A DNA stretch of 64,000 bases from Sminthopsis crassicaudata (Eukaryota). The stretch lies in the NCBI RefSeq assembly GCF_048593235.1, contig NC_133622.1:251166055-251230054 (forward strand), given 5' to 3'. The position numbers and the translations under genes are program-made. Position 1 is the stretch's first letter, and every line of letters starts with the position of its first letter. The notes under the pieces were generated by a model. That model was given only the letters and a program-made list of their open reading frames with translations. It searched no databases and was not told where the DNA came from. This document shows positions 7,115 to 64,000 of this stretch, piece by piece.

Positions 7115-8260
<1,146 letters not shown>

Positions 8261-19619: not shown

Positions 19620-20240
19620 CCGGTTCTGACATTGCCTAGTTAATGTTCTAAGAAGGACCCTCCTAGCACTGACATTCTCTGTTCTAAAATCCCTCCCATC
19701 TCTGTGTTCTCCAGTCCCTTCTAGCTCTAACCTATGATATCCTAATGGCGGTCCCAGTGCTGATGTTCTATGTCCTAAGATCCCTGCAGCTCTGATATTC
19801 TAAGGTTCCTTCTAGTATTGCCATTCTGTATTCTAAATTCCCAACCAGTTCTGACATTCTGTTCTAGGTTCTAAGTCCCTTCCCAGCACTGACATTCTCC
19901 ATTCTAAGGTGTCTCCCATCTCTAACATTCTGGGTTCTAAGATCTTTCCGAGCTCTGACAATCTATGTCTCCTCTCTCCTGTGATATTCTGAGTTTTAAG
20001 GATGCAACAGGGTCCTCCCAGCACTGACATTTTCTGGTCTAAGACTCCTCCCAGTTCTGACATTCTTAGTTCTGGGTTCTAAGGTGCTGTGAAGATCCAA
20101 CATTCTATCTTTTATGTTCTAAGAGTGTTCCTAGCTATGACTTGTCTGTTTTAAGGTTTCTCCTAGCTTTGACATTTTATTTCAAAGGAGCTTTTTAGCT
20201 TTGATATTCTCTGTTCTGTGGCCTAAGAACCCTCCCAGAT
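19620..20240 (-). repeat. Degenerate ~38-bp tandem array (gttctaaggtccctcccagctctgacattct-like)
   Basis: gttctaag...ccag(c/t)(t/a)ctgacattct motifs recur with much decay. Confidence 0.65.
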
Positions 20241-21783: not shown

Positions 21784-22280
21784 GAAAATACTATGTTGTG
21801 ATCCAAACTCTGTGCCCATAATCCTGGAGCTAGCTGCAGATGGCTGTCTTCTCCATTCATTCTTCAAGCCCTCCCTCCTTCTTCACCATCATGGCGGGTT
21901 CCCGGGTGCTAGAGAAATTGTCCAATTTTCACTGTAACAATTTCCCCCCAAAACTGACAAACACTATAATCAAAACTCAGTTTACCGTTTTGTAGCTTGT
22001 TGAGGTGTGAGAAAATAATGGAGGAAACTTAATAAGGCAGATTAGACTTAAAAGTATATCAAGTATAAATTTTTTTTTTTTTTTTTTTTAAAGAAGATCC
22101 TGTTGTTGAACATTTACCAGCAAAGCCCTAGCCCCAGGTTTGGAGGAGTTGGAAGCCCATCCCCATGATCATGCTATGGTCTGTTAAGAAGCGAAAGGCA
22201 AATGGACTAAAAGGCAGTTTGGAAAGCTCTGAGAGCCCACTACTTAAAAGTGGGGAAGGAGACTGAGGGGAGGGGATGCT

Positions 22281-22360
22281 GGAGGAGGGAGAATGGGAGT
22301 GGAGGAGGGAGAATGGGAGTGGAGGAGGGAGAATGGGGGTGGAGGAGGGAGAATGGGGAT
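22281..22360. repeat. 20-bp tandem repeat x4 (ggaggagggagaatgggagt)
   Basis: Units start at 22281, 22301, 22321 and 22341. Confidence 0.95.
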
Positions 22361-42488: not shown

Positions 42489-42665
42489 GGGGGCTGCTAG
42501 GTGGCACAGTGGATAGAGCACCACCCCTGAGGTCAGGAGGACCTGAGTTCAAATCTGCCCTCAGACACTTAACACTTCCACACTGTGTGATCCTCCAAGT
42601 CACTGAACCCCAATTGTCTCAGGAAAAAAAAAATTTAAATAAATAAAAAAAACTTAAACAAAAAA
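42489..42665 (+). mobile_element. CORE-SINE (WSINE1-like) with A-rich tail
   Basis: ggggctgctaggtggcacagtggatagagcacc...aggacctgagttcaaatctg...cactgaaccccaattgtctcag followed by an A-rich tail. Confidence 0.85.
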
Positions 42666-43589
42666 ATCCAACCCTTAGCCTAAGGGAGCTTCTGATCTAA
42701 CAGTGAGAAATCACATGTAAACAACTATGTACAAACTGAATATATGTACAAACTGAGTTATATGGAGAGCATTCCTTCTGGGAGGAGAAAGCGAGGAGGT
42801 GGAGATGAGGAGGGAGACTTGGGGGACCAAAGTCTGACAGGAGGAAATGGACAGGCTGGTTTGTCCAGTCTGATCGAAGCCTAAAGTCTGTGAAAGGAAC
42901 ATAAAAGCTTAGAAAGTAAGAGCTGGAAGAGATCTTAGAGGCCCTCCCAGCCCATCCCTCAGGAGCCGACTGGTTTGGATGGCAGTTCATACTGCCTCCT
43001 AATTCTCTAAAACCATTGCTTTTCAAAAACAGCATGGACTGCCTTCACAGAAAGGTAGTGAGCTCTCCAGAACTGGAAGTCTACAAGCAAAATATGGCTG
43101 GCTGTCAACATTGTTTAAAGGGGCATGTCTGCTAGCTCTGGGAGGGAGGGAGGAAGGAAAGGAGGGAGGGAAGTGCTGGACTTGGGGCCTCTGAGAAGCT
43201 TCCAGCTCTGAGAATGATTAATGTGGGTAAAGGTAGAAGGCCTGGAAATGCCAAGTTCAGTAAGGCAAGAAGAGAATGGGGATGATTCTGATACTGTCGG
43301 CCTAGCTCTGGGGTGGGGGGCCGTTGGCAAACAGTGTCTACAAATGAACCCCTGGAATGATTGCAGCTGGTACTTCTAGAGGGCCATTTCCCTTGAGTGA
43401 GCAGGAACCTCTGATTGCCCAGGCAGGATCTGAGATTCCCAGTGTGCATTGGAGGGCGTGTCATCTGATCATACCTAATTTGTGAATCCATTGGAAAGCA
43501 CGCCTCCTCTACTTCAGCCCTTTTGGGTGCAGTTGCACCCAGCTCTCAGAGAAGGGGAGGTTGGGCTTGGGGACACCACAAGAGGAGGA

Positions 43590-46500
43590 GGTGACTTAAA
43601 ATGCCGGGTATGAGAACTCTCCCAGAGTCTGGGGCATTCTCAGAGGCTGGGGTGCTCTCGGAGGATGGGATGTTGGCAGAGGTTGGGCATCTCTGAGGCT
43701 GGGGTACTGTCTGAGACTGGGGTGGTCTCAGAGGCTGGGATGTTTTCAGAGGTGGAAGTGAGCTCAGATGCCAGGTCTGAGAACTCTCTCAGAGGCTGGG
43801 GCATTCTCAGAGGCTGGGTTGCTCTCAGAGGCTGGAGTGTTCTGAAAGGCTGAAGTGTTCTGAGAGGCTGTGGAGCATTGAGAGGCTGAGTTGTTCCCAG
43901 AAGCTGGGTTGCTCCCATTGGCTGAAATATTCTCAGAGGCTGGGACATTCTCAGAGGCAGGGGGGTGCTCTCAGAGGCCGGGATGTTCTCAGAGGCTGGG
44001 GCTATCTCAGAGGCTGGGACATTCTCAGAGGCTGTGTTGCACTCATTGGCTGGGACCATGTCAGAGGCAGGGATGTACTCAGAGGCTGTGCTGTTCTCAG
44101 ATGTTGGGTTGCTCCCAGATGCTGGAACATTCTCAGAGGCTGGGGCATTCTCAGAGGCTGGGGCTATCTCAGAAGCAGAGGCTGGGACGTTCTCAGAGGC
44201 TGGGATGTTCTCAGAGGCTGGGGCTAACTCAGAGGCCGGGACGTTCTCTGAGGCTGGGGCTATCTCAGAGGTCGAGAAGTTCTCAGAGGCAGGGTTGCAC
44301 CCATTGGCTGTGACCTTCTCAGAGGCTGGGACACTCTCAGAGGCTGGGCTATCTCAGAGGCTAGGACATTCTCAGAGGCCGGGGCTATCTCAGAGGCTGG
44401 GACGTTCTCAGAGGCTAGGTTGCACCCATTGGCTGGGACCATGTTAGAGGCAGGGATGCACTCAGAGACTGGGGCTATCTCAGAGGCCGGGACGTTCTTA
44501 GAGGCTGGGACGTTTTCAGAGTCTGGGTCGCACCCATTGGTTGGGACCATGTCAGAGGCAGGGATGCACTCAGAGACTGGGGCTATCTCAGAGGCCGGGA
44601 CGTTCTCAGAGGCTGGGGCTATGTCAGAGGCTAGGATGTTCTCAGAGGCTGGGTTGCACCCATTGGCTGGGACCATGTCAGAGGCAGGAATGCACTCAGA
44701 GACTGGGGCTATTTCAGAGGCCGAGAGGTTCTCAGAGGCTGGGACATTCTCAGAGTCTGGGTTGCTTCCATTGGCTGGAACCTTCTCAGAGGCCGGGACA
44801 CTCTCAGAGTCTGAGACGCTCTTAGAGGCTGGGGCTATCTCAGAGGCTGGGGTGCTCTCAGAGGCTGGGGTGTTTTCAGAGGCTGGGGTGTTCTCAGAGG
44901 TGCAAGTCAGCTCAGATGCCACGTTTGAGAACTCTCTCAGAGTCTGGGGTCTTCTCAGAGGCTGGGGTGTTCTCAGAGGCTGGGGTGTTCTGAGAGGCCC
45001 GGACTTTCTCAGAGGCTGAGTTGCTCCCATTGGCTGGGACGCACTCAGAGGCCGAGACGTTCTCAGAGGCTGGGACATTCTCAGAGGCAGAAGCCGGGAC
45101 GTTCTCAGAGGCTGGGGTGTTCTGAGAGGCTGGGACGTTCTCAGAGGCTGGGGTGTTCTGAGAGGCTGGGACGCTCTCAGAGGCTGGAACATTCTTAGAG
45201 GCTGGGGTATTCTCAGAGGCTGGGGTGCTCCCATCAGCTGGGACCTTGTTAGTGGCAGGGACGCTCTCAGAGGCTGGGGCTATCTCAGAGGCTGGGGTGC
45301 TCTCAGAGACTGTGTTACTCCCATTGGCTGGGATGTTCTCAGAGGCAGGGGCTATCTCAGAGGCCGGGATCTTCTCAGAGGCTGGGACGCTCTAAGAGGC
45401 TGGGGCTATCTCAGAGGCCGGGACCTTCTCAGAGCCTGGAACGTTCTCAGAGGCTGGGGCTATCTCTGAGTCTGGGAGGTTCTCAGAGGCAGGGACACTC
45501 TCAGAGGCCGGATGTTCTCAGAGGCCCGGATGTTCTCAGAAGCTGGGGCTATCTCAGAGGCCGGGACACTCTCAGAGTCTGAGACGCTCTTAGAGGCTGG
45601 GGCTATCTCAGAGGCTGGGGTGTTTTCAGAGGCTGGGGTGCTCTCAGAGGCTGGGGTGCTCTCAGAGACTGTGTTGCTCCCATTGGCTGGGATGTTCTCA
45701 GAGGCCGGGATGTTCTCAGAGTCTGGGGTCTTCTCAGAGGCTGGGGTGTTCTGAGAGGCTGGGATGCTCTCAGAGGCTGGGACGTTCTCAGAGGCTGGGA
45801 CATTCTCAGAGGCAGGGACATTCTCAGAGGCTGGAACATTCTCAGAGGCTGGGGTGTTTTAAGAGGCTGGGGTGTTCTCAGAGGTGCAAGTCAGCTCAGA
45901 TGCCACGTTTGAGAACTCTCTCAGAGTCTGGGGTCTTCTCAGAGTCTGGGGTCTTCTCAGAGGCTGAGTTGCTCCCATTGGCTGGGACGCACTCAGAGGC
46001 CGAGACGTTCTCAGAGGCTGGGGTGTTCTGAGAGGCTGGGACGCTCTCAGAGGCTGGAACATTCTTAGAGGCTGGGGTATTCTCAGAGGCTGGGGTGCTC
46101 CCATCAGCTGGGACCTTGTTAGTGGCAGGGACGCTCTCAGAGGCTGGGGCTATCTCAGAGGCTGGGGTGCTCTCAGAGACTGTGTTGCTCCCATTGGCTG
46201 GGATGTTCTCAGAGGCCGGGATGTTCTCAGAGTCTGGGGTCTTCTCAGAGGCTGGGGTGTTCTGAGAGGCTGGGATGCTCTCAGAGGCTGGGACGTTCTC
46301 AGAGGCTGGGACATTCTCAGAGGCAGAAGCCAGCACGTTCTCAGAGGCTGAGACGCTGTCAGAGATTGGGGTGCTCCAAGAGGCTGGAACATTCTAAGTG
46401 GCTGGGGTATTCTCAGAGGCTGGGGTGCTCCCATCAGCTGGGACCTTGTTAGTGGCAGGGACGCTCTCAGAGGCAGGGGCTATCTCAGAGGCCGGGATCT

Positions 46501-49500
46501 TCTCAGAGGCTGGGACGCTCTAAGAGGCTGGGGTTATCTCAGAGGCCAGGACCTTCTCAGAGCCTGGAACGTTCTCAGAGGCTGGGGCTATCTCTGAGTC
46601 TGGGAGGTTCTCAGAGGCAGGGACACTCTCAGAGGCCGGATGTTCTCAGAGGCCCGGATGTTCTCAGAAGCTGGGGCTATCTCAGAGGCCGGGACACTCT
46701 CAGAGTCTGAGACGCTCTTAGAGGCTGGGGCTATCTCAGAGGCTGGGTGTTTTCAGAGGCTGGGGTGCTCTCAGAGGCTGGGGTGTTTTCAGAAGCTGGG
46801 GTGTTCTCAGAGGTGCAAGTCAGCTCAGATGCCACGTTTGAGAACTCTCTCAGAGTCTGGGGTGTTCTGAGAGGCTGGGACGCTCTCAGAGGCTGGGGCT
46901 ATCTCAGAGGCTGGGGCTATCTCAGAGGCAGGGACATTCTCAGAGGCTGGGGTGCTCTCAGAGGCTGGAACATTCTCAGAGGCTGGGGTGTTTTAAGAGG
47001 CTGGGGTGTTCTCAGAGGTGCAAGTCAGCTCAGATGCCACGTTTGAGAACTCTCTCAGAGTCTGGGGTCTTCTCAGAGTCTGGGGTCTTCTCAGAGGCTG
47101 AGTTGCTCCCATTGGCTGGGACGCACTCAGAGGCCGAGACGTTCTCAGAGGCTGGGGTGTTCTGAGAGGCTGGGACGCTCTCAGAGGCTGGAACATTCTT
47201 AGAGGCTGGGGTATTCTCAGAGGCTGGGGTGCTCCCATCAGCTGGGACCTTGTTAGTGGCAGGGATGCTCTCAGAGGCTGGGGCTATCTCAGAGGCTGGG
47301 GTGCTCTCAGAGACTGTGTTGCTCCCATTGGCTGGGATGTTCTCAGAGGCCGGGATGTTCTCAGAGTCTGGGGTCTTCTCAGAGGCTGGGGTGTTCTGAG
47401 AGGCTGGGATGCTCTCAGAAGCTGGGAGGTTCTCAGAGGCTGGGATGCTCTCAGAAGCTGGGAGGTTCTCAGAGGCTGGGACATTCTCAGAGGCAGAAGC
47501 CAGCACGTTCTCAGAGGCTGGGGTGTTCTGAGAGGCTGGGACACTCTCAGAGGCTGGAACATTCTTAGAGGCTGGGGTATTCTCAGAGGCTGGGGTGCTC
47601 CCATCAGCTGGGACCTTGTTAGTGGCAGGGACGCTCTCAGAGGCTGGGGCTATCTCAGAGGCTGGGGTGCTCTCAGAGACTGTGTTGCTCCCATTGGCTG
47701 GGATGTTCTCAGAGGCCGGGATGTTCTCAGAGTCTGGGGTCTTCTCAGAGGCTGGGGTGTTCTGAGAGGCTGGGATGCTCTCAGAGGCTGGGACGTTCTC
47801 AGAGGCTGGGACATTCTCAGAGGCAGAAGCCAGCACGTTCTCAGAGGCTGAGACGCTCTCAGAGATTGGGGTGCTCCAAGAGGCTGGAACATTCTAAGTG
47901 GCTGGGATATTCTCAGAGCCTGGGGTGCTCCCATCAGCTGGGACCTTGTTAGTGGCAGGGACGCTCTCAGAGGCAGGGGCTATCTCAGAGGCCGGGATCT
48001 TCTCAGAGGCTGGGACGCTCTAAGGGGCTGGGGTTTTCTCAGAGGCCAGGACCTTCTCAGAGCCTGGAACGTTCTCAGAGGCTGGGGCTATCTCTGAGTC
48101 TGGGAGGTTCTCAGAGGCAGGGACACTCTCAGAGGCCGGATGTTCTCAGAGGCCCGGATGTTCTCAGAAGCTGGGGCTATCTCAGAGGCCGGGACACTCT
48201 CAGAGTCTGAGACGCTCTTAGAGGCTGGGGCTATCTCAGAGGCTGGGGTGTTTTCAGAGGCTGGGGTGCTCTCAGAGGCTGGGGTGTTTTCAGAAGCTGG
48301 GGTGTTCTCAGAGGTGCAAGTCAGCTCAGATGCCACGTTTGAGAACTCTCTCAGAGTCTGGGGTGTTCTGAGAGGCTGGGATGCTCTCAGAGTCTGGGGT
48401 GTTCTCAGAGGCTGGGACGTTCTCAGAGGCTGGGACGTTCTCAGAGGCCGGGACTTTGTCAGAGGCTGGGACGTTTTCAGAGGCTGGGACGTTCTCAGAG
48501 GCCGGGACTTTGTCAGAGGCTGGGACGTTCTCAGAGGCCGGGACACTCTCAGAGTCTGAGATGCTCTTAGAGGCTGGGGCTATCTCAGAGGCTGGGGTGC
48601 TCTCAGAGGCTGGGGTGTTTTCAGAGGCTGGGACGTTCTCAGAGGCCGGGACACTCTCAGAGTCTGAGACGCTCTTAGAGGCTGGGGCTATCTCAGAGGC
48701 TGGGGTGTTTTCAGAGGCTGGGGTGCTCTCAGAGGCTGGGGTGTTTTGAGAGGCTGGGACGCTCTCAGAGGCTGGAACATTCTTAGAGGCTGGGGTATTC
48801 TCAGAGGCTGGGGTGCTTGCATCAGCTGGGACCTTGTTAGTGGCAGGGACGCTCTCAGAGGCTGGGGCTATCTCAGAGGCTGGGGTGCTCTCAGAGACTG
48901 TGTTGCTCCCATTGGCTGGGATGTTCTCAGAGGCCGGGATGTTCTCAGAGTCTGGGGTCTTCTCAGAGGCTGGGGTGTTCTGAGAGGCTGGGATGCTCTC
49001 AGAGGCTGGGACGTTCTCAGAGGCTGGGACATTCTCAGAGGCAGAAGCCAGCACATTCTCAGAGGCTGGGGTGTTCTGAGAGGCTGGGACACTCTCAGAG
49101 GCTGGGACGTTCTCAGAGGCTGGGACATTCTCAGAGGCAGAAGCCAGCACGTTCTCAGAGGCTGGGGTGTTCTGAGAGGCTGGGACACTCTCAGAGGCTG
49201 GAACATTCTTAGAGGCTGGGGTATTCTCAGAGGCTGGGGTGCTCCCATCAGCTGGGACCTTGTTAGTGGCAGGGACGCTCTCAGAGGCTGGGGCTATCTC
49301 AGAGGCTGGGGTGCTCTCAGAGACTGTGTTACTCCCATTGGCTGGGATGTTCTCAGAGGCAGGGGCTATCTCAGAGGCCGGATGTTCTCAGAGGCCCGGA
49401 TGTTCTCAGAAGCTGGGGCTATCTCAGAGGCCGGGACACTCTCAGAGTCTGAGACGCTCTTAGAGGCTGGGGCTATCTCAGAGGCTGGGGTGTTTTCAGA

Positions 49501-52500
49501 GGCTGGGGTGCTCTCAGAGGCTGGGGTGCTCTCAGAGACTGTGTTGCTCCCATTGGCTGGGATGTTCTCAGAGTCTGGGGTCTTCTCAGAGGCTGGGGTG
49601 TTCTGAGAGGCTGGGATGCTCTCAGAGGCTGGGACGTTCTCAGAGGCTGGGACATTCTCAGAGGCAGGGACATTCTCAGAGGCTGGGGTGCTCTCAGAGG
49701 CTGGAACATTCTCAGAGGCTGGGGTGTTTTAAGAGGCTGGGGTGTTCTCAGAGGTACAAGTCAGCTCAGATGCCACGTTTGAGAACTCTCTCAGAGTCTG
49801 GGGTCTTCTCAGAGTCTGGGGTCTTCTCAGAGGCTGAGTTGCTCCCATTGGCTGGGACGCACTCAGAGGCCGAGACGTTCTCAGAGGCTGGGGTGTTCTG
49901 AGAGGCTGGGACGCTCTCAGAGGCTGGAACATTCTTAGAGGCTGGGGTATTCTCAGAGGCTGGGGTGCTCCCATCAGCTGGGACCTTGTTAGTGGCAGGG
50001 ATGCTCTCAGAGGCTGGGGCTATCTCAGAGGCTGGGGTGCTCTCAGAGACTGTGTTGCTCCCATTGGCTGGGATGTTCTCAGAGGCCGGGATGTTCTCAG
50101 AGTCTGGGGTCTTCTCAGAGGCTGGGGTGTTCTGAGAGGCTGGGATGCTCTCAGAAGCTGGGAGGTTCTCAGAGGCTGGGATGCTCTCAGAAGCTGGGAG
50201 GTTCTCAGAGGCTGGGACATTCTCAGAGGCAGAAGCCAGCACGTTCTCAGAGGCTGGGGTGTTCTGAGAGGCTGGGACACTCTCAGAGGCTGGAACATTC
50301 TTAGAGGCTGGGGTATTCTCAGAGGCTGGGGTGCTCCCATCAGCTGGGACCTTGTTAGTGGCAGGGACGCTCTCAGAGGCTGGGGCTATCTCAGAGGCTG
50401 GGGTGCTCTCAGAGACTGTGTTGCTCCCATTGGCTGGGATGTTCTCAGAGGCCGGGATGTTCTCAGAGTCTGGGGTCTTCTCAGAGGCTGGGGTGTTCTG
50501 AGAGGCTGGGATGCTCTCAGAGGCTGGGACGTTCTCAGAGGCTGGGACATTCTCAGAGGCAGAAGCCAGCACGTTCTCAGAGGCTGAGACGCTCTCAGAG
50601 ATTGGGGTGCTCCAAGAGGCTGGAACATTCTAAGTGGCTGGGATATTCTCAGAGCCTGCGGTGCTCCCATCAGCTGGGACCTTGTTAGTGGCAGGGACGC
50701 TCTCAGAGGCAGGGGCTATCTCAGAGGCCGGGATCTTCTCAGAGGCTGGGACGCTCTAAGGGGCTGGGGTTTTCTCAGAGGCCAGGACGTTCTCAGAGCC
50801 TGGAACGTTCTCAGAGGCTGGGGCTATCTCTGAGTCTGGGAGGTTCTCAGAGGCAGGGACACTCTCAGAGGCCGGATGTTCTCAGAGGCCCGGATGTTCT
50901 CAGAAGCTGGGGCTATCTCAGAGGCCGGGACACTCTCAGAGTCTGAGACGCTCTTAGAGGCTGGGGCTATCTCAGAGGCTGGGGTGTTTTCAGAGGCTGG
51001 GGTGCTCTCAGAGGCTGGGGTGTTTTCAGAAGCTGGGGTGTTCTCAGAGGTGCAAGTCAGCTCAGATGCCACGTTTGAGAACTCTCTCAGAGTCTGGGAT
51101 GCTCTCAGAGTCTGGGGTGTTCTCAGAGGCTGGGACGTTCTCAGAGGCTGGGACGTTCTCAGAGGCTGGGACGTTCTCAGAGGCCGGGACTTTGTCAGAG
51201 GCTGGGACGTTTTCAGAGGCTGGGACGTTCTCAGAGGCCGGGACTTTGTCAGAGGCTGGGACGTTCTCAGAGGCCGGGACACTCTCAGAGTCTGAGATGC
51301 TCTTAGAGGCTGGGGCTATCTCAGAGGCTGGGGTGCTCTCAGAGGCTGGGGTGTTTTCAGAGGCTGGGACGTTCTCAGAGGCCGGGACACTCTCAGAGTC
51401 TGAGACGCTCTTAGAGGCTGGGGCTATCTCAGAGGCTGGGGTGTTTTCAGAGGCTGGGGTGCTCTCAGAGGCTGGGGTGTTTTGAGAGGCTGGGACGCTC
51501 TCAGAGGCTGGAACATTCTTAGAGGCTGGGGTATTCTCAGAGGCTGGGGTGCTTGCATCAGCTGGGACCTTGTTAGTGGCAGGGACGCTCTCAGAGGCTG
51601 GGGCTATCTCAGAGGCTGGGGTGCTCTCAGAGACTGTGTTGCTCCCATTGGCTGGGATGTTCTCAGAGGCCGGGATGTTCTCAGAGTCTGGGGTCTTCTC
51701 AGAGGCTGGGGTGTTCTGAGAGGCTGGGATGCTCTCAGAGGCTGGGACGTTCTCAGAGGCTGGGACATTCTCAGAGGCAGAAGCCAGCACGTTCTCAGAG
51801 GCTGAGACGCTCTCAGAGATTGGGGTGCTCCAAGAGGCTGGAACATTCTAAGTGGCTGGGGTATTCTCAGAGGCTGGGGTGCTCCCATCAGCTGGGACCT
51901 TGTTAGTGGCAGGGACGCTCTCAGAGGCAGGGGCTATCTCAGAGGCCGGGATCTTCTCAGAGGCTGGGACGCTCTAAGAGGCTGGGGTTATCTCAGAGGC
52001 CAGGACCTTCTCAGAGCCTGGAACGTTCTCAGAGGCTGGGGCTATCTCTGAGTCTGGGAGGTTCTCAGAGGCAGGGACACTCTCAGAGGCCGGATGTTCT
52101 CAGAGGCCCGGATGTTCTCAGAAGCTGGGGCTATCTCAGAGGCCGGGACACTCTCAGAGTCTGAGACGCTCTTAGAGGCTGGGGCTATCTCAGAGGCTGG
52201 GGTGTTTTCAGAGGCTGGGGTGCTCTCAGAGGCTGGGGTGTTTTCAGAAGCTGGGGTGTTCTCAGAGGTGCAAGTCAGCTCAGATGCCACGTTTGAGAAC
52301 TCTCTCAGAGTCTGGGGTGTTCTGAGAGGCTGGGACGCTCTCAGAGGCTGGGGCTATCTCAGAGGCTGGGGCTATCTCAGAGGCAGGGACATTCTCAGAG
52401 GCTGGGGTGCTCTCAGAGGCTGGAACATTCTCAGAGGCTGGGGTGTTTTAAGAGGCTGGGGTGTTCTCAGAGGTGCAAGTCAGCTCAGATGCCACGTTTG

Positions 52501-55500
52501 AGAACTCTCTCAGAGTCTGGGGTCTTCTCAGAGTCTGGGGTCTTCTCAGAGGCTGAGTTGCTCCCATTGGCTGGGACGCACTCAGAGGCCGAGACGTTCT
52601 CAGAGGCTGGGGTGTTCTGAGAGGCTGGGACGCTCTCAGAGGCTGGAACATTCTTAGAGGCTGGGGTATTCTCAGAGGCTGGGGTGCTCCCATCAGCTGG
52701 GACCTTGTTAGTGGCAGGGATGCTCTCAGAGGCTGGGGCTATCTCAGAGGCTGGGGTGCTCTCAGAGACTGTGTTGCTCCCATTGGCTGGGATGTTCTCA
52801 GAGGCCGGGATGTTCTCAGAGTCTGGGGTCTTCTCAGAGGCTGGGGTGTTCTGAGAGGCTGGGATGCTCTCAGAAGCTGGGAGGTTCTCAGAGGCTGGGA
52901 CATTCTCAGAGGCAGAAGCCAGCACGTTCTCAGAGGCTGGGGTGTTCTGAGAGGCTGGGACACTCTCAGAGGCTGGAACATTCTTAGAGGCTGGGGTATT
53001 CTCAGAGGCTGGGGTGCTCCCATCAGCTGGGACCTTGTTAGTGGCAGGGACGCTCTCAGAGGCTGGGGCTATCTCAGAGGCTGGGGTGCTCTCAGAGACT
53101 GTGTTGCTCCCATTGGCTGGGATGTTCTCAGAGGCCGGGATGTTCTCAGAGTCTGGGGTCTTCTCAGAGGCTGGGGTGTTCTGAGAGGCTGGGATGCTCT
53201 CAGAGGCTGGGACGTTCTCAGAGGCTGGGACATTCTCAGAGGCAGAAGCCAGCACGTTCTCAGAGGCTGAGACGCTCTCAGAGATTGGGGTGCTCCAAGA
53301 GGCTGGAACATTCTAAGTGGCTGGGATATTCTCAGAGCCTGGGGTGCTCCCATCAGCTGGGACCTTGTTAGTGGCAAGGACGCTCTCAGAGGCAGGGGCT
53401 ATCTCAGAGGCCGGGATCTTCTCAGAGGCTGGGACGCTCTAAGGGGCTGGGGTTTTCTCAGAGGCCAGGACGTTCTCAGAGCCTGGAACGTTCTCAGAGG
53501 CTGGGGCTATCTCTGAGTCTGGGAGGTTCTCAGAGGCAGGGACACTCTCAGAGGCCGGATGTTCTCAGAGGCCCGGATGTTCTCAGAAGCTGGGGCTATC
53601 TCAGAGGCCGGGACACTCTCAGAGTCTGAGACGCTCTTAGAGGCTGGGGCTATCTCAGAGGCTGGGGTGTTTTCAGAGGCTGGGGTGCTCTCAGAGGCTG
53701 GGGTGTTTTCAGAAGCTGGGGTGTTCTCAGAGGTGCAAGTCAGCTCAGATGCCACGTTTGAGAACTCTCTCAGAGTCTGGGGTGTTCTGAGAGGCTGGGA
53801 TGCTCTCAGAGTCTGGGGTGTTCTCAGAGGCTGGGACGTTCTCAGAGGCTGGGACGTTCTCAGAGGCCGGGACTTTGTCAGAGGCTGGGACGTTTTCAGA
53901 GGCTGGGACGTTCTCAGAGGCCGGGACTTTGTCAGAGGCTGGGACGTTCTCAGAGGCCGGGACACTCTCAGAGTCTGAGATGCTCTTAGAGGCTGGGGCT
54001 ATCTCAGAGGCTGGGGTGCTCTCAGAGGCTGGGGTGTTTTCAGAGGCTGGGACGTTCTCAGAGGCCGGGACACTCTCAGAGTCTGAGATGCTCTTAGAGG
54101 CTGGGGCTATCTCAGAGGCTGGGGTGTTTTCAGAGGCTGGGGTGCTCTCAGAGGCTGGGGTGTTTTCAGAGGCTGCGGTGTTCTCAGAGGCTGGGGTGTT
54201 CTCAGAGGTGCAAGTCAGCTCAGATGCCACGTTTGAGAACTCTCTCAGAGTCTGGGGTCTTCTCAGAGGCTGGGGTGTTCTGAGAAGCTGGGACGCTCTC
54301 AGAGGCTGGGGTATTCTCAGAGGCTGGGGTGCTTCTATCGGCTGGGACCTTCTTAGTGGCAGGGACATTCTCAGAGGCTGGGGTGCTCTCAGAGACTGTG
54401 TTGCTCCCATTGGCTGGGACCTTCTCAGAGGCTGGGACGCTCTAAGAGGCTGGGGTTATCTCAGAGGCCAGGACATTCTCAGTGGCTGGGGCTATCTCAG
54501 AGGCTGGGGCGTTCTCGGAGGCTGAGACGTATTCAAAGGCTGGGACAATCTCAGAGGCTGGGACATTCTCAGAGGCTGGGACATTCTCAGAGGCTGGGAT
54601 GCTTCCATTGGCTGGGACCTTCTCAGAGGCCGGGACACTCTCAGAGGCCGGGACGTTCTCAGAGGCTGGGGCTATCTCAGGGGCTGGGATGCTCTCAGAG
54701 GCCAGGACATTCTCAGTGGCTGGGGCTATCTCAGAGGCTGGGGCGTTCTCGGAGGCTGAGACGTATTCAAAGGCTGGGACAATCTCAGAGGCTGGGACAT
54801 TCTCAGAGGCTGGGATGCTTCCATTGGCTGGGACCTTCTCAGAGGCCGGGACACTCTCAGAGGCCGGGACGTTCTCAGAGGCTGGGTCTATCTCAGGGGC
54901 TGGGATGCTCTCAGAGGCTGGAACATTCTCAGAGGCTGGGGTGTTTTAAGAGGCTGGGGTGTTCTCAGAGGTGCAAGTCAGCTCAGATGCCAGGTTTGAG
55001 AACTCTCTCAGAGTCTGGAGTCTTCTCAGAGGCTGGGGTGTTCTGAGAGGCTGGGACTTTCTCAGAGGCTGAGTTGCTCCCATTGGCTGGGACGCACTCA
55101 GAGGCCGAGACGTTCTCAGAGGCTGGGACATTCTCAGAGGCAGAAGCCGGGACGTTCTCAGAGGCTGGGACACTCTCAGAGGCTGGGACGCTCTCAGAGA
55201 TTGGGGTGCTCCAAGAGGCTGGAACATTCTTAGAGGCTGGGGCATTCTCAGAGGCTGGGGTGCTCCCATCGGCTGGGACCTTCTTAGTGGCAGGGACGTT
55301 CTCAGAGGCTGGGGTGTTTTCAGAGGCTGGGACCTTCTTAGTGGCAGGGACGTTCTCAGAGGCTGGGGTGTTTTCAGAGGCTGGGACGTTCTCAGAGGCC
55401 GGGACACTCTCAGAGTCTGAGATGCTCTTAGAGGCTGGGGCTATCTCAGAGGCTGGGGTGTTTTCAGAGGCTGGGGTGCTCTCAGAGGCTGGGGTGTTTT

Positions 55501-58500
55501 CAGAGGCTGCGGTGTTCTCAGAGGCTGGGGTGTTCTCAGAGGTGCAAGTCAGCTCAGATGCCACGTTTGAGAACTCTCTCAGAGTCTGGGGTCTTCTCAG
55601 AGGCTGGGGTGTTCTGAGAAGCTGGGACGCTCTCAGAGGCTGGGGTATTCTCAGAGGCTGGGGTGCTTCTATCGGCTGGGACCTTCTTAGTGGCAGGGAC
55701 GTTCTCAGAGGCTGGGGTGCTCTCAGAGACTGTGTTGCTCCCATTGGCTGGGACCTTCTCAGAGGCTGGGACGCTCTAAGAGGCTGGGGTTATCTCAGAG
55801 GCCAGGACATTCTCAGTGGCTGGGGCTATCTCAGAGGCTGGGGCGTTCTCGGAGGCTGAGACGTATTCAAAGGCTGGGACAATCTCAGAGGCTGGGACAT
55901 TCTCAGAGGCTGGGACATTCTCAGAGGCTGGGATGCTTCCATTGGCTGGGACCTTCTCAGAGGCCGGGACACTCTCAGAGGCCGGGACGTTCTCAGAGGC
56001 TGGGGCTATCTCAGGGGCTGGGATGCTCTCAGAGGCCAGGACATTCTCAGAGGCTGGGGCTATCTCAGAGGCTGGGGCGTTCTCGGAGGCTGAGACGTAT
56101 TCAAAGGCTGGGACAATCTCAGAGGCTGGGACATTCTCAGAGGCTGGGATGCTTCCATTGGCTGGGACCTTCTCAGAGGCCGGGACACTCTCAGAGGCCG
56201 GGACGTTCTCAGAGGCTGGGTCTATCTCAGGGGCTGGGATGCTCTCAGAGGCTGGAACATTCTCAGAGGCTGGGGTGTTTTAAGAGGCTGGGGTGTTCTC
56301 AGAGGTGCAAGTCAGCTCAGATGCCAGGTTTGAGAACTCTCTCAGAGTCTGGAGTCTTCTCAGAGGCTGGGGTGTTCTGAGAGGCTGGGACTTTCTCAGA
56401 GGCTGAGTTGCTCCCATTGGCTGGGACGCACTCAGAGGCCGAGACGTTCTCAGAGGCTGGGACATTCTCAGAGGCAGAAGCCGGGACGTTCTCAGAGGCT
56501 GGGACACTCTCAGAGGCTGGGACGCTCTCAGAGATTGGGGTGCTCCAAGAGGCTGGAACATTCTTAGAGGCTGGGGCATTCTCAGAGGCTGGGGTGCTCC
56601 CATCGGCTGGGACCTTCTTAGTGGCAGGGACGTTCTCAGAGGCTGGGGTGCTTTCAGAGGCTGGGGTGCTCTCAGAAACTGTGTTGCTCCCATTGGCTGG
56701 GACCTTCTCAGAGGCTGGGACGCTCTAAGAGGCTGGGGTTATCTCAGAGGCCAGGACCTTTTCAGAGGCTGTAACGTTCTCAGAGGCTGGGGCTCTCTCA
56801 GAGGCCGGGAGGTTCTCAGAGGCAGGGATGCTCTCAGAGGCTGGGACTCTCTCAGAGGCCGGGACACTCTCAGAGTCCGAGACGCTCTTAGAGGCTGGGG
56901 CTATCTCAGAGGCTGGGACATTCTCAGAGGCTGGGGCTATCTCAGAGGCCGGGACGTTCTCAGAGGCTGGGGCTATCTCAGAGGCCGGGACGTTCTCAGA
57001 GGCTGGGAGTTTCTCAGAGGCAGGGACGCTCTCAAAGGCTGGGATTTTCTCAGAGGCTGGCATGTTCTCAGAGGCCGGGTTGCTGCCATTGGCTGGGACC
57101 TTCTCAGAGGCTGGGGCTATCTCTGAGGCTGGGACGCTCTCAGAGGCTGGGGCGTTCTCGGAGGCTGAGACGTATTCAAAGGCTGGGACATTCTCAGAGG
57201 CTGGGACATTCTCAGAGGCTGGGATGCTTCCATTGGCTGGGACCTTCTCAGAGGCCGGGACACTCTCAGAGTCTGAGACGCTCTTAGAGGCTGGGGCTAT
57301 CTCAGAGGCTGGGGTGCTCTCAGAGGCTGGGGTGCTCTCAGAGGCTGGGGTGTTTTCAGAGGTTGGGGTGTTCTCAGAGGTGCAAGTCAGCTCAGATGCC
57401 AGGTTTGAGAACTCTCTCAAGAGTCTGGGGTCTTCTCAGAGGCTGGGGTGTTCTGAGAGGCTGGGACGCTCTCAGAGGCTGGGACGTTCTCAGAGGCTGG
57501 GACATTCTCAGAGGCAGAAGCCAGGACGTTCTCAGAGGCTGGGACGCTCTCAGAGATTGGGGTGGTCCAAGAGGCTGGAACATTCTTAGAGGCTGGGGCA
57601 TTCTCAGAGGCTGGGGTGCTCCCATCGGCTGGGACCTTCTTAGTTGCAGGGACGCTCTCAGAGGCTGGGGCTATCTCAGAGGCTGGGGTGCTCTCAGAGA
57701 CTGTGTTACTCCCATTGGCTGGGATGTTCTCAGAGGCAGGGGCTATCTCAGAGGCCGGGATCTTCTCAGAGGCTGGGACGCTCTAAGAGGCTGGGGTTAT
57801 CTCAGAGGCTGGGACGCTCTAAGAGGCTGGGGTTATCTCAGAGGCTGGGGTGCTCTCAGAAACTGTGTTGCTCCCATTGGCTAGGACCTTCTCAGAGGCT
57901 GGGACGCTCTAAGAGGCTGGGGTTATCTCAGAGGCCAGGACCTTTTCAGAGGCTGTAACGTTCTCAGAGGCCAGGAGGTTCTCAGAGGCAGGGATGTTCT
58001 CAGAGACTGGGGCTATCTCAGAGGCCGGGAGGTTCTCAGAGGCTGGGGCTCTCTCAGAGGCCGGGAGGTTCTCAGAGGCAGGGATGCTCTCAGAGGCTGG
58101 GACTCTCTCAGAGGCCGGGACACTCTCAGAGTCCGAGACGCTCTTAGAGGCTGGGGCTATCTCAGAGGCTGGGGTGCTCTCAGAGGCTGGGGTGTTTTCA
58201 GAGGCCGGGACTTTCTCAGAGGCAGGGACATTCTCAGAGGCTGGGGCTATCTCAGAGGCCGGGACGTTCTCAGAGGCAGGGGCTATCTCAGAGGCCGGGA
58301 CGTTCTCAGAGATTGGGGTGCTCCAAGAGGCTGGGATGCTCTCAGAGGCTGGGGTGCTCCCATCGGCTGGGACCTTCTTAGTGGCAGGGACGCACTCAGA
58401 GGCCGAGACGTTCTCAGAGGCTGGGACATTCTCAGAGGCAGAAGCCGGGACGTTCTCAGAGGCTGGGGTGTTCTGAGAGGCTGGGACGCTCTCAGAGGCT

Positions 58501-61500
58501 GGAACATTCTTAGAGGCTGGGGTATTCTCAGAGGCTGGGGTGCTCCCATCAGCTGGGACCTTGTTAGTGGCAGGGATGCTCTCAGAGGCTGGGGTGCTCT
58601 CAGAGACTGTGTTGCTCCCATTGGCTGGGATGTTCTCAGAGTCTGGGGTCTTCTCAGAGGCTGGGGTGTTCCGAGAGGCTGGGGTGCTCTCAGAGGCTGG
58701 GGTGCTCTCAGAGACTGTGTTGCTCCCATTGGCTGGGACCTTCTCAGAGGCTGGGACGCTCTAAGAGGCTGGGGTTATCTCAGAGGCCAGGACATTCTCA
58801 GTGGCTGGGACAATCTCAGAGGCTGGGGCGTTCTCGGAGGCTGAGACATTCTCAGAGGCTGGGATGCTTCAATTGGCTGGGACCTTCTCAGAGGCCGGGA
58901 CACTCTCAGAGGCCGGGACGTTCTTAGAGGCTGGGGCTATCTCAGGGGCTGGGATGCTCTCAGAGGCTGGAACATTCTCAGAGGCTGGGGTGTTTTAAGA
59001 GGCTGGGGTGTTCTCAGAGGTGCAAGTCAGCTCAGATGCCAGGTTTGAGAACTCTATCAGAGTCTGGAGTCTTCTCAGAGGCTGGGGTGTTCTGAGAGGC
59101 TGGGACTTTCTCAGAGGCTGAGTTGCTCCCATTGGCTGGGACGCACTCAGAGGCCGAGACGTTCTCAGAGGCTGGGACATTCTCAGAGGCAGAAGCCAGG
59201 ACGTTCTCAGAGGCTGGGACCTTCTCAGAGGCTGGGACGCTCTAAGAAGCTGGGGTTATCTCAGAGGCCAGGACCTTTTCAGAGGCTGTAACGTTCTCAG
59301 AGGCTGGGGCTCTCTCAGAGGCCGGGAGGTTCTCAGAGGCAGGGATGTTCTCAGAGACTGGGGCTATCTCAGAGGCCGGGAGGTTCTCAGAGGCTGGGGC
59401 TCTCTCAGAGGCCGGGAGGTTCTCAGAGGCAGGGATGCTCTCAGAGGCTGGGACTCTCTCAGAGGCCGGGACACTCTCAGAGTCCGAGACGCTCTTAGAG
59501 GCTGGGGCTATCACAGAGGCTGGGGTGCTCTCAGAGGCTGGGACATTCTCAGAGGCTGGGCTGCTCTCAGAGGCCGCGACGTTCTCAGAGGTTGGGGCTA
59601 TCTCAGAGGCCGAGAAGTTCTCAGAGGTTGGGACATTCTCAGAGGCTGGGTTGCACCCATTGGCTGGGACCATGTCAGAGGCAGGGGTGCACTCAGAGGC
59701 TGGGGCTATCTCAGAGGCTGGGGTGTTTTCAGAGGCTGGGGTGCTCTCAGAGGCTGGGGTGTTTTCAGAAGCTGGGGTGTTCTCAGAGGTGCAAGTCAGC
59801 TCAGATGCCACGTTTGAGAACTCTCTCAGAGTCTGGGGTGTTCTGAGAGGCTGGGATGCTCTCAGAGTCTGGGGTGTTCTCAGAGGCTGGGACGTTCTCA
59901 GAGGCTGGGACGTTCTCAGAGGCCGGGACTTTGTCAGAGGCTGGGACGTTTTCAGAGGCTGGGACGTTCTCAGAGGCCGGGACTTTGTCAGAGGCTGGGA
60001 CGTTCTCAGAGGCCGGGACACTCTCAGAGTCTGAGATGCTCTTAGAGGCTGGGGCTATCTCAGAGGCTGGGGTGCTCTCAGAGGCTGGGGTGTTTTCAGA
60101 GGCTGGGACGTTCTCAGAGGCCGGGACACTCTCAGAGTCTGAGATGCTCTTAGAGGCTGGGGCTATCTCAGAGGCTGGGGTGTTTTCAGAGGCTGGGGTG
60201 CTCTCAGAGGCTGGGGTGTTTTCAGAGGCTGCGGTGTTCTCAGAGGCTGGGGTGTTCTCAGAGGTGCAAGTCAGCTCAGATGCCACGTTTGAGAACTCTC
60301 TCAGAGTCTGGGGTCTTCTCAGAGGCTGGGGTGTTCTGAGAAGCTGGGACGCTCTCAGAGGCTGGGGTATTCTCAGAGGCTGGGGTGCTTCTATCGGCTG
60401 GGACCTTCTTAGTGGCAGGGACGTTCTCAGAGGCTGGGGTGCTCTCAGAGACTGTGTTGCTCCCATTGGCTGGGACCTTCTCAGAGGCTGGGACGCTCTA
60501 AGAGGCTGGGGTTATCTCAGAGGCCAGGACATTCTCAGTGGCTGGGGCTATCTCAGAGGCTGGGGCGTTCTCGGAGGCTGAGACGTATTCAAAGGCTGGG
60601 ACAATCTCAGAGGCTGGGACATTCTCAGAGGCTGGGACATTCTCAGAGGCTGGGATGCTTCCATTGGCTGGGACCTTCTCAGAGGCCGGGACACTCTCAG
60701 AGGCCGGGACGTTCTCAGAGGCTGGGGCTATCTCAGGGGCTGGGATGCTCTCAGAGGCCAGGACATTCTCAGAGGCTGGGGCTATCTCAGAGGCTGGGGC
60801 GTTCTCGGAGGCTGAGACGTATTCAAAGGCTGGGACAATCTCAGAGGCTGGGACATTCTCAGAGGCTGGGATGCTTCCATTGGCTGGGACCTTCTCAGAG
60901 GCCGGGACACTCTCAGAGGCCGGGACGTTCTCAGAGGCTGGGTCTATCTCAGGGCAGGCTGGGATGCTCTCAGAGGCTGGAACATTCTCAGAGGCTGGGG
61001 TGTTTTAAGAGGCTGGGGTGTTCTCAGAGGTGCAAGTCAGCTCAGATGCCAGGTTTGAGAACTCTCTCAGAGTCTGGAGTCTTCTCAGAGGCTGGGGTGT
61101 TCTGAGAGGCTGGGACTTTCTCAGAGGCTGAGTTGCTCCCATTGGCTGGGACGCACTCAGAGGCCGAGACGTTCTCAGAGGCTGGGACATTCTCAGAGGC
61201 AGAAGCCGGGACGTTCTCAGAGGCTGGGACACTCTCAGAGGCTGGGACGCTCTCAGAGATTGGGGTGCTCCAAGAGGCTGGAACATTCTTAGAGGCTGGG
61301 GCATTCTCAGAGGCTGGGGTGCTCCCATCGGCTGGGACCTTCTTAGTGGCAGGGACGTTCTCAGAGGCTGGGGTGTTTTCAGAGGCTGGGACGTTCTCAG
61401 AGGCCGGGACACTCTCAGAGTCTGAGATGCTCTTAGAGGCTGGGGCTATCTCAGAGGCTGGGGTGTTTTCAGAGGCTGGGGTGCTCTCAGAGGCTGGGGT

Positions 61501-64000
61501 GTTTTCAGAGGCTGCGGTGTTCTCAGAGGCTGGGGTGTTCTCAGAGGTGCAAGTCAGCTCAGATGCCACGTTTGAGAACTCTCTCAGAGTCTGGGGTCTT
61601 CTCAGAGGCTGGGGTGTTCTGAGAAGCTGGGACGCTCTCAGAGGCTGGGGTATTCTCAGAGGCTGGGGTGCTTCTATCGGCTGGGACCTTCTTAGTGGCA
61701 GGGACGTTCTCAGAGGCTGGGGTGCTCTCAGAGACTGTGTTGCTCCCATTGGCTGGGACCTTCTCAGAGGCTGGGACGCTCTAAGAGGCTGGGGTTATCT
61801 CAGAGGCCAGGACATTCTCAGTGGCTGGGGCTATCTCAGAGGCTGGGGCGTTCTCGGAGGCTGAGACGTATTCAAAGGCTGGGACAATCTCAGAGGCTGG
61901 GACATTCTCAGAGGCTGGGACATTCTCAGAGGCTGGGATGCTTCCATTGGCTGGGACCTTCTCAGAGGCCGGGACACTCTCAGAGGCCGGGACGTTCTCA
62001 GAGGCTGGGGCTATCTCAGGGGCTGGGATGCTCTCAGAGGCCAGGACATTCTCAGAGGCTGGGGCTATCTCAGAGGCTGGGGCGTTCTCGGAGGCTGAGA
62101 CGTATTCAAAGGCTGGGACAATCTCAGAGGCTGGGACATTCTCAGAGGCTGGGATGCTTCCATTGGCTGGGACCTTCTCAGAGGCCGGGACACTCTCAGA
62201 GGCCGGGACGTTCTCAGAGGCTGGGTCTATCTCAGGGGCTGGGATGCTCTCAGAGGCTGGAACATTCTCAGAGGCTGGGGTGTTTTAAGAGGCTGGGGTG
62301 TTCTCAGAGGTGCAAGTCAGCTCAGATGCCAGGTTTGAGAACTCTCTCAGAGTCTGGAGTCTTCTCAGAGGCTGGGGTGTTCTGAGAGGCTGGGACTTTC
62401 TCAGAGGCTGAGTTGCTCCCATTGGCTGGGACGCACTCAGAGGCCGAGACGTTCTCAGAGGCTGGGACATTCTCAGAGGCAGAAGCCGGGACGTTCTCAG
62501 AGGCTGGGACACTCTCAGAGGCTGGGACGCTCTCAGAGATTGGGGTGCTCCAAGAGGCTGGAACATTCTTAGAGGCTGGGGCATTCTCAGAGGCTGGGGT
62601 GCTCCCATCGGCTGGGACCTTCTTAGTGGCAGGGACGTTCTCAGAGGCTGGGGTGCTTTCAGAGGCTGGGGTGCTCTCAGAAACTGTGTTGCTCCCATTG
62701 GCTGGGACCTTCTCAGAGGCTGGGACGCTCTAAGAGGCTGGGGTTATCTCAGAGGCCAGGACCTTTTCAGAGGCTGTAACGTTCTCAGAGGCTGGGGCTC
62801 TCTCAGAGGCCGGGAGGTTCTCAGAGGCAGGGATGCTCTCAGAGGCTGGGACTCTCTCAGAGGCCGGGACACTCTCAGAGTCCGAGACGCTCTTAGAGGC
62901 TGGGGCTATCTCAGAGGCTGGGACATTCTCAGAGGCTGGGGCTATCTCAGAGGCCGGGACGTTCTCAGAGGCTGGGGCTATCTCAGAGGCCGGGACGTTC
63001 TCAGAGGCTGGGAGTTTCTCAGAGGCAGGGACGCTCTCAAAGGCTGGGATTTTCTCAGAGGCTGGCATGTTCTCAGAGGCCGGGTTGCTGCCATTGGCTG
63101 GGACCTTCTCAGAGGCTGGGGCTATCTCTGAGGCTGGGACGCTCTCAGAGGCTGGGGCGTTCTCGGAGGCTGAGACGTATTCAAAGGCTGGGACATTCTC
63201 AGAGGCTGGGACATTCTCAGAGGCTGGGATGCTTCCATTGGCTGGGACCTTCTCAGAGGCCGGGACACTCTCAGAGTCTGAGACGCTCTTAGAGGCTGGG
63301 GCTATCTCAGAGGCTGGGGTGCTCTCAGAGGCTGGGGTGCTCTCAGAGGCTGGGGTGTTTTCAGAGGTTGGGGTGTTCTCAGAGGTGCAAGTCAGCTCAG
63401 ATGCCAGGTTTGAGAACTCTCTCAAGAGTCTGGGGTCTTCTCAGAGGCTGGGGTGTTCTGAGAGGCTGGGACGCTCTCAGAGGCTGGGACGTTCTCAGAG
63501 GCTGGGACATTCTCAGAGGCAGAAGCCAGGACGTTCTCAGAGGCTGGGACGCTCTCAGAGATTGGGGTGGTCCAAGAGGCTGGAACATTCTTAGAGGCTG
63601 GGGCATTCTCAGAGGCTGGGGTGCTCCCATCGGCTGGGACCTTCTTAGTTGCAGGGACGCTCTCAGAGGCTGGGGCTATCTCAGAGGCTGGGGTGCTCTC
63701 AGAGACTGTGTTACTCCCATTGGCTGGGATGTTCTCAGAGGCAGGGGCTATCTCAGAGGCCGGGATCTTCTCAGAGGCTGGGACGCTCTAAGAGGCTGGG
63801 GTTATCTCAGAGGCTGGGACGCTCTAAGAGGCTGGGGTTATCTCAGAGGCTGGGGTGCTCTCAGAAACTGTGTTGCTCCCATTGGCTAGGACCTTCTCAG
63901 AGGCTGGGACGCTCTAAGAGGCTGGGGTTATCTCAGAGGCCAGGACCTTTTCAGAGGCTGTAACGTTCTCAGAGGCCAGGAGGTTCTCAGAGGCAGGGAT
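43590..64000. repeat. Over 20-kb 18-bp-unit minisatellite/satellite (consensus ctcagaggctgggRYRYt) with nested higher-order repeats; continues past the window end
   Basis: CTCAGAG cores recur every 18 bp, with 17-, 24-, 36-, 43- and 54-bp variants. Identical ORFs in the track recur at offsets of 1134, 2736, 2719, 1334, 6056 and 6005 bp. Confidence 0.97.

Follow-up and report, generated by a model that had tools for sequence, protein, structure and literature searches.

Structure of the array downstream of DRAP1

The window analysed here, a 64,000-nucleotide genomic stretch from Sminthopsis crassicaudata (fat-tailed dunnart) that is free of N, contains the coding exons of DRAP1 (NC2 alpha) on the plus strand (32369–35212) and, downstream of them, an 18-bp tandem array whose G-rich strand is also the plus strand (43623–64000). 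The DRAP1 exon peptides were read directly and searched exon by exon, without a joined spliced model. The exon at 32785–32856 matched NC2 alpha in PDB entry 1JFI_A (E = 1.5e-9), and the exon at 34514–34603 showed a 100% match to marsupial DRAP1 proteins. The stop codon is located at 35210–35212, and the array starts approximately 8.4 kb downstream of it, as the original prediction had placed it. From the flanking genes and the human gene order, we take the locus to be syntenic with human 11q13.1.

TRF reported the array as a single call (43623–63999; period 18; 1116.7 copies; 71% matches and 3% indels), and the array was also traced by anchor spacings and a position matrix. It continues past the end of the window, and the length of at least 20.4 kb is thus a lower bound. 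The anchor spacing was exactly 18 bp in 865 of 1,053 cases, indicating head-to-tail units within the minisatellite size range of about 10–100 bp. In the position matrix, unit positions 1–13 and 18 are 77–98% conserved, and positions 14–17 are conserved at 53–55%. The 18-mers are of many different kinds, with the most frequent one accounting for only 86 of 868, and this corresponds to the interspersed variant repeats of minisatellites and VNTRs. The array is GC-rich with one G-rich strand: the GC content is 0.58–0.60, the GC skew is +0.22 to +0.26 in each 2-kb bin, and runs of GGG or longer amount to 42.8 per kb versus 3.6 per kb for CCC or longer. The GCTGGGGT-type unit core occurs in 222 copies in the array compared to three in the remaining 43.6 kb, and one array locus is visible in the window. 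These results agree with the size (at least 20.4 kb and about 1,100 units), the unit (ctcagaggctgggNNNNt, including its variable stretch), and the strand asymmetry that had been described for the array from a first reading of the sequence. The abundant retained CpG noted in the same reading was not borne out. The 402 CpGs correspond to an observed/expected ratio of 0.24 at a GC content of 0.585, which is below the 0.37–0.50 of the genic part of the window and, judged from the sequence, appears to resemble that of methylated bulk DNA. A CpG island was rejected, as the threshold ratio is at least 0.6.

A two-unit proto-repeat is present in inverted orientation approximately 350 bp to the left of the array (43186–43225, minus strand), and it bears the dispersed motif TTCCAGCTCTGA on the plus strand. 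This proto-repeat is the best match to a trimer of the unit outside the array, with a Smith-Waterman score of 40 (next best, 28; background, 11.8 ± 2.8 over 8,656 windows). The motif TTCCAGCTCTGA has 18 matches in the window versus 3.5 expected, and the other copies of the dispersed element bearing it do not reach high scores against the unit trimer.

Higher-order structure

The left edge of the array (43543–45000, plus strand), as read directly, is degenerate and shows short sub-periods of 108 and 126 bp, with the first punctuation-like motif at about 43589–43634. The best ungapped identity of its 300-bp windows to any other part of the array is merely 0.47–0.83; the left 1.5 kb or so of the array is old and degenerate, and has no close copy. 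From about position 45,990 rightward, nearly all of the 300-bp windows have a copy of at least 99% identity elsewhere in the array.

Two kinds of large blocks were found on the plus strand. The first is a 2.7-kb block in approximately three copies spanning 46920–54166 (46920–49655, 49656–52374, and 52375–54166, the last being partial). The identity is 99.44% between 46920–49054 and 49656–51790, and 99.1–99.8% at offsets of 2719 and 2683. The second is a 6.0-kb block that contains sub-blocks of 1.3 kb and is present in at least two copies spanning 53639–64000 (one at 53639–59694, the other from 59695 to the window end). At offsets of 6056, 6059, and 6005, the identity is 99.84–100%; the 2,671 bp at 55325–57995 are exactly the same as those at 61330–64000, and the 1,297-bp sub-blocks are 99.85% identical. 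The individual units are about 71–75% alike, whereas blocks of 0.4–2.7 kb are 99–100% alike, as in satellite DNA with higher-order repeats. The differences between block copies are grouped in patches of one or two units, such as the nine differences within 48363–48400. This patchiness fits conversion or exchange, not scattered point mutation. CpG-driven divergence of the block copies was rejected, with CpG transitions making up 12 of the 93 differences and the differences being patchy.

The array is punctuated by a motif, an example of which is located at 47017–47060 (plus strand), that makes a 25-bp unit and shifts any reading frame by +1. It is present in 21 copies, as counted both from the unit that starts the motif and from the 25-bp spacings.

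Folding and motif content

The canonical G-quadruplex motif (four tracts of three or more G with loops of 1–7 bases) was not found on either strand of the array, and a G-quadruplex minisatellite of the CEB1 or CEB25 kind was rejected on this ground. The mean G4Hunter score in the array is 0.57, and merely 0.3% of the windows exceed 1.5. A hairpin-forming repeat was also rejected, the folding z-scores against shuffled sequences being 0.81 and -0.01.

The CCAAT-box consensus RRCCAATSR has 58 matches in the window versus 8.9 expected, and 55 of them lie in the array (for example, 47109–47117, minus strand). Fifty-four of the 55 are AGCCAATG[GA] and one is AACCAATGG. All of them are on the minus strand and on one variant unit.

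Evaluation of alternative explanations

An unlikely alternative is that the array is real and its assembled length is inflated by over-expansion of near-identical blocks. Blocks of 2,671, 879, and 419 bp that match exactly at offsets of 1.3–6 kb could be explained in this way, and the public DNA runs contain just 0.32–0.46 of the sampled array words. However, many of the block copies are 99.0–99.9% and not 100% identical, and they differ in the patchy manner of true paralogous blocks. In addition, the published dunnart assemblies are built on long reads (PMC13408496), and the sampled array words are present in seven studies.

It is rather improbable that the array serves as the template of a repeat-based lncRNA, of a long 5′ leader or upstream transcript of TSGA10IP, or of a testis piRNA precursor. 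The strict strand asymmetry across 20 kb would suit such a role, and with the G-rich strand on plus, a plus-strand transcript would itself be rich in G and liable to form R-loops. Among the runs guessed to be RNA, several small ones contain 0.14–0.35 of the array words, and four others of the same organism contain none; this difference could point to tissue-specific expression if the former are truly RNA. On the other hand, the runs in question may come from DNA libraries, and among the listed runs with array words none is on record as RNA. The share of array words expected from the run size was tried as a means to tell DNA from RNA and was dropped, since the DNA runs showed 0.46 compared to an expected 0.89. 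The Rfam search of the array returned no family, folding showed no structural bias, and the depletion of CpG speaks against a long state that is unmethylated and promoter-like. We consider it doubtful, to a still greater degree, that the array is a regulatory or RNA element of the dunnart lineage, that is, a germline-transcribed G-rich array, 30 kb or more in length and directly upstream of the testis gene TSGA10IP, that would form R-loops, carry dozens of same-orientation NF-Y (CCAAT) sites, and either set or insulate the expression of TSGA10IP or give rise to a repeat-built lncRNA or piRNA precursor.

A protein-binding or chromatin platform, either an NF-Y-bound CCAAT array or a heterochromatin block or boundary insulating DRAP1 from TSGA10IP, is highly improbable. 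DRAP1 and TSGA10IP are differently expressed in other mammals, and the presumed location of the array between them would be consistent with a boundary, as would the one-strand accumulation of RRCCAATSR with a platform for NF-Y. However, every CCAAT box traces back to a single variant unit that was copied together with its block, so that the number of boxes reflects amplification and not independent retention. Furthermore, inspection of the unit by eye found no CTCF-like core.

The array encodes no protein. The consensus unit is stop-free in five of six frames, as had been pointed out originally; stops nonetheless occur in all frames of the array (72–475 per frame), the longest open stretches being 283–353 codons, and none of the six frames is open. 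When the register was tracked, the stop-bearing units numbered 35–890 of 1,008 depending on the register. Thirty-four units have a length that is not a multiple of three, and both the frame-shifting and the stop-bearing units have been amplified. The variable positions 14–17 are contiguous and lack a period of three, that is, a codon-wobble pattern. A Pfam search of the array translations gave nothing above the cut-off, a protein word search gave one weak metagenome match and no vertebrate relative, and a metagenome scan with a dimer of the unit gave no matches. An exhaustive HMMER search against 1.84 billion representatives found no related protein of any length; its best matches were compositional look-alikes, namely repeat proteins of a protist, Plasmodium, a snail, a fungus, and metagenomes with 18–55% identity. 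The decayed mucin-like coding repeat that had been envisaged, here taken as the remnant of a minus-strand gene (hexapeptide E-N-V-P-A-S), is barely credible and is largely refuted already for the present sequence: the 18-bp unit does equal six codons, and the minus-strand NVPASE register does look protein-like in translation, with fewer stop-bearing units than any other register (35 of 1,008), but this low count is expected without selection because the register can reach a stop via just one single-base path, and the amplified frame-shifting and stop-bearing units, the variable positions, and the searches for relatives all speak against it.

Discussion

We conclude, with a probability of roughly 0.7, that the array is an unusually large, non-coding, GC-rich minisatellite that is neutral and has grown by slippage and unequal exchange. 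A neutral, self-expanding minisatellite is the simplest reading and is favored by the evidence, and nothing requires or points to a coding past. The original prediction of a lineage-specific expansion stands as far as the expansion is concerned, much of which is recent given the kilobase blocks of 99–100% identity as opposed to the degenerate left edge. The sampled array words were found almost solely in runs of one organism. None of the three functions proposed along with it (an RNA template, a binding or heterochromatin platform, and a coding repeat) gained support.

The array may have originated from the tail of a dispersed element, as suggested by the one strong local match. The seed may have been a 17–18-bp proto-repeat internal to such a tail, a copy of which sits 350 bp to the left of the array, and a similar motif would persist as the 25-bp punctuation. 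The growth probably began with replication slippage and went on through repeated rounds of unequal exchange or gene conversion, with exchange occurring between ever larger misaligned blocks. Such exchange would keep the interior homogeneous and leave the edge to decay, and the expansion of the interior is presumably recent. The array is most likely a tolerated spacer without selected function. Possible side effects include instability of the locus, those of the CCAAT boxes (approximately 55, all in the same orientation), and, if the array is transcribed on the plus strand, R-loops, the G-rich strand then being the non-template strand.

Some observations count against the neutral reading. With 20.4 kb or more, the array reaches or exceeds the upper size range usual for minisatellites, and it lies in a gene-dense region. 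The array words in the small runs guessed to be RNA could mean expression, and assembly over-expansion could account in part for the 2.7-kb blocks of 100% identity.

The GC-rich hypervariable minisatellites or VNTRs of mammals include the Jeffreys-type MS32 and CEB1 in human and Ms6-hm and Hm-2 in mouse. The dunnart array shares with the Jeffreys type a short head-to-tail unit, a GC-rich composition with one G-rich strand, interspersed variants, a chi-like GCTGG core in the unit, and the probable growth by slippage and unequal exchange or conversion. Unlike most of these minisatellites, it is at least 20 kb long, contains kilobase higher-order blocks, and is interstitial in a gene-dense region. 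The nested blocks of 99–100% identity, the homogeneous interior, and the degenerate edge are reminiscent of higher-order satellite DNA of the alpha-satellite type. In contrast to the latter, the unit is 18 bp and not nucleosome-sized, the array measures tens of kilobases instead of hundreds of kilobases to megabases, and it occupies one visible euchromatic locus, with no other loci in the window. Immunoglobulin switch regions, which form R-loops, likewise extend over kilobases as short repeats whose G clusters lie on one strand, and have a core of the GCTGGGGT type, but the present locus is not an immunoglobulin locus, and the GAGCT pentamer that typifies switch regions occurs once in the array (AGCT, 64 times); the resemblance is one of composition only. 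RSX, the Xist repeat domains, FIRRE, and DXZ4 are also strand-asymmetric tandem repeats of tens of kilobases. The array differs from them in its far shorter unit, the lack of an Rfam match, and its position in a region syntenic with human 11q13.1. A literature search found no mention of the dunnart array.

If neutral, the array mainly documents the length that a minisatellite can attain in a gene-dense, conserved syntenic block while leaving its neighbors undisturbed, here 20 kb or more with nested blocks of 1.3, 2.7, and 6 kb. It also illustrates clearly how a short-unit array passes into a higher-order structure. The array would be of greater importance if it were transcribed or bound, as it abuts the 5′ side of a putative testis-gene neighbor. 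The locus should be flagged as prone to assembly error and length polymorphism, and the latter makes it a potential hypervariable marker for laboratory colonies of this marsupial.

Extent and composition of the array

The 18-bp tandem array downstream of DRAP1 is real and exceeds chance expectation by a wide margin. Tandem Repeats Finder, applied to the window, reported one array at 43623–63999 (period 18, 1116.7 copies, 71% matches, 3% indels), bearing out its predicted existence. The start of 43,590 given in the original prediction is fair, because direct reading of the sequence places degenerate units from ~43,543 and the first motif resembling the punctuation (a recurring motif giving a 25-bp unit) at ~43,589–43,634. 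The array was segmented on a conserved anchor, and 865 of the 1,053 anchor spacings were exactly 18 bp. Among 868 clean 18-mers, positions 1–13 and 18 were conserved at 77–98% and positions 14–17 at only 53–55%, in exact agreement with the predicted unit, ctcagaggctgggNNNNt.

The GC content of the array is 0.58–0.60. The strand asymmetry noticed at first reading was also found, with a GC skew of +0.22 to +0.26 in all 2-kb bins and 42.8 G runs (≥3) per kb on the plus strand versus 3.6 C runs. In contrast, the CpG sites described as abundant and retained (n = 402) correspond to an observed/expected ratio of 0.24, which is far under the level of CpG islands and under that of the genic part of the window (0.37–0.50). 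The commoner variants of the unit seem to derive, by CpG decay, from rarer units that contain CpG.

Gene neighbourhood

DRAP1 was queried exon by exon, leaving out a joined spliced model. Its exon peptides are directly readable on the plus strand; one exon matched NC2 alpha (PDB 1JFI_A, E = 1.5e-9), and another was 100% identical to marsupial DRAP1 proteins, which were found for devil, wallaby, koala, and monito del monte. The stop codon lies at 35210–35212, and the array therefore starts ~8.4 kb downstream, as had been proposed. The window also contains an exon-bearing ORF of FIBP (4034–4627, minus strand; Pfam PF05427, E = 5.8e-33) and intronless CCDC85B (7520–8257, plus strand; PF10226, E = 1.4e-77). 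The order FIBP-CCDC85B-...-DRAP1 is that of human 11q13.1.

Nested blocks and probable growth of the array

The array is organized hierarchically, with nested duplicated blocks detected as exact-word diagonals. A 2.7-kb block occurs in about three copies (46920–49655, 49656–52374, and a partial third; 99.1–99.8% identity) and a 6.0-kb block in at least two (53639–59694 and 59695 to the window end; 99.84–100%), and sub-blocks of 1.3 kb are 99.85–100% identical. The segments 55325–57995 and 61330–64000 show no difference over 2,671 bp. At the left edge (43,590–45,000), the best copy of any 300-bp window elsewhere in the array reaches only 0.47–0.83, and from ~45,990 rightward nearly all 300-bp windows have a copy of at least 99%. 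Differences between block copies are not scattered; they cluster in patches one or two units long, and only 12 of the 93 are CpG transitions. The 25-bp punctuation unit (21 occurrences) and a 17-bp unit (nine) both belong to larger blocks.

A degenerate edge, a homogenized interior, and larger periods built on smaller ones form a pattern to which unequal exchange and conversion give rise in tandem arrays. We presume, with a probability of roughly 0.7, that the array represents a non-coding, GC-rich minisatellite of unusual size, probably neutral, which would have recently expanded and been homogenized in kilobase blocks through slippage and unequal exchange or conversion. It would be a further case of a known repeat class.

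Partial over-expansion of the array in the assembly, a caveat compatible with the other readings, has a small but appreciable chance. The window contains no N bases, and the published dunnart assemblies are based on long reads (PMC13408496).

Tests for RNA and protein-binding functions

That the array serves as a template for a transcribed lncRNA, leader, or piRNA is unlikely: no Rfam family reached the gathering score in 42700–64000, and among the public runs listed with array words, none is recorded as RNA. These words occurred in 19 runs of one organism (six studies) and in one run of a second organism (share 0.13, a seventh study). Array words were absent from four runs guessed to be RNA, and their share was 0.14–0.35 in several others of unrecorded library type. 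Four very small runs from 2018 (52–92 million letters, guessed RNA) contained 14–28% of the sampled array words, whereas the four guessed-RNA runs free of them are larger; the words in the small runs could reflect either tissue-specific expression or enrichment in DNA libraries. Run size was considered as a guide to library type (DNA versus RNA) and was rejected after failing its own control. The unit dimer had no match in a metagenome scan, and the array was mentioned in no paper found.

The possibility that the array is a protein-binding or chromatin platform draws on its CCAAT boxes. The pattern RRCCAATSR occurs 58 times in the window versus 8.9 expected, and 55 of these lie in the array (43915–63887), all on the minus strand, nearly all as the NF-Y-type consensus AGCCAATGG, spaced 108–1,300 bp apart. 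However, all the array boxes stem from one variant unit copied along with its block, and their number is therefore no independent evidence of selection; we regard such a platform as quite improbable. The array contained no canonical G-quadruplex motif (loops 1–7) on either strand, its mean G4Hunter score was 0.57, and it folded as single-stranded DNA no better than shuffled sequences (z = 0.81 for the plus and -0.01 for the minus strand). The tests performed here found no functional marks on the array.

Coding potential

As originally predicted, the consensus unit is free of stops in five of six frames, and stops nevertheless occur in every phase of the array. No frame is open throughout (72–95 stops in the plus frames and 316–475 in the minus frames), and no open stretch exceeds 353 codons. 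When the register was tracked unit by unit, so that frame shifts no longer mattered, the best register (N-V-P-A-S-E, minus strand) had stops in 35 of 1,008 units. So few stops are to be expected even in the absence of selection, since the consensus of this register can mutate to a stop by just one single-base change. Thirty-four units have a length that is not a multiple of three, and units bearing stops or shifting the frame have been amplified too. The variable bases form one run of four, unlike wobble positions.

Four array ORFs showed no Pfam domain above the cut-off, and the only match of a 268-aa ORF in a word search was a weak one from a metagenome. Because a word search is blind to longer proteins and the idea of a decayed gene hinges on missing relatives, an exhaustive HMMER search was run with a 274-aa ORF. 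It gave 254 matches at E ≤ 0.001 and no vertebrate protein with the repeat of the array. The best matches were repeat proteins with other periods (18–55% identical) from a protist, Plasmodium ovale (a TRAP-like protein), a snail (RhoGEF), a fungus ('involucrin repeat protein'), and metagenomes; they are compositional look-alikes. The stops in all frames, the amplified frame-shifting units, the lack of a wobble pattern, and the lack of related proteins in these searches make a decayed, mucin-like coding repeat very improbable.

A possible seed and other repeats

The best match to the unit trimer outside the array lies ~350 bp to its left (43181–43240, minus strand), with a Smith-Waterman score of 40 versus 11.8 ± 2.8 for 8,656 windows and 28 for the next best. 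It includes the motif TTCCAGCTCTGA, dispersed in the window (18 occurrences versus 3.5 expected), which we take to resemble the tail of a common marsupial SINE. Two copies of this tail motif stand in opposite orientation 280 bp apart, close to the left end of the array (42917–42928, minus; 43200–43211, plus), the right-hand one lying in the best non-array match. The element tail holds two half-repeats of 17–18 bp, and within the array punctuation the motif recurs with a single mismatch (minus strand, 43746). A small array with a 33-bp unit (19869–19964, ~2.9 copies, followed by more degenerate ones as far as 20060) is built from the same motif, in a TCCCAGCTCTGACATTCT-like form similar to the unit of the large array, suggesting that the tail is prone to tandem duplication. 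From these resemblances, such a tail seems to have a roughly even chance of having seeded the array; the proposal remains a lead, because other copies of the element do not reach high scores against the unit.

Two further repeats were observed in the window: a G/A-rich 20-bp unit repeated in tandem 3.9 times, almost perfectly (98%), at 22280–22357, and an A-rich stretch with a 19-bp repeat at 42614–42655.
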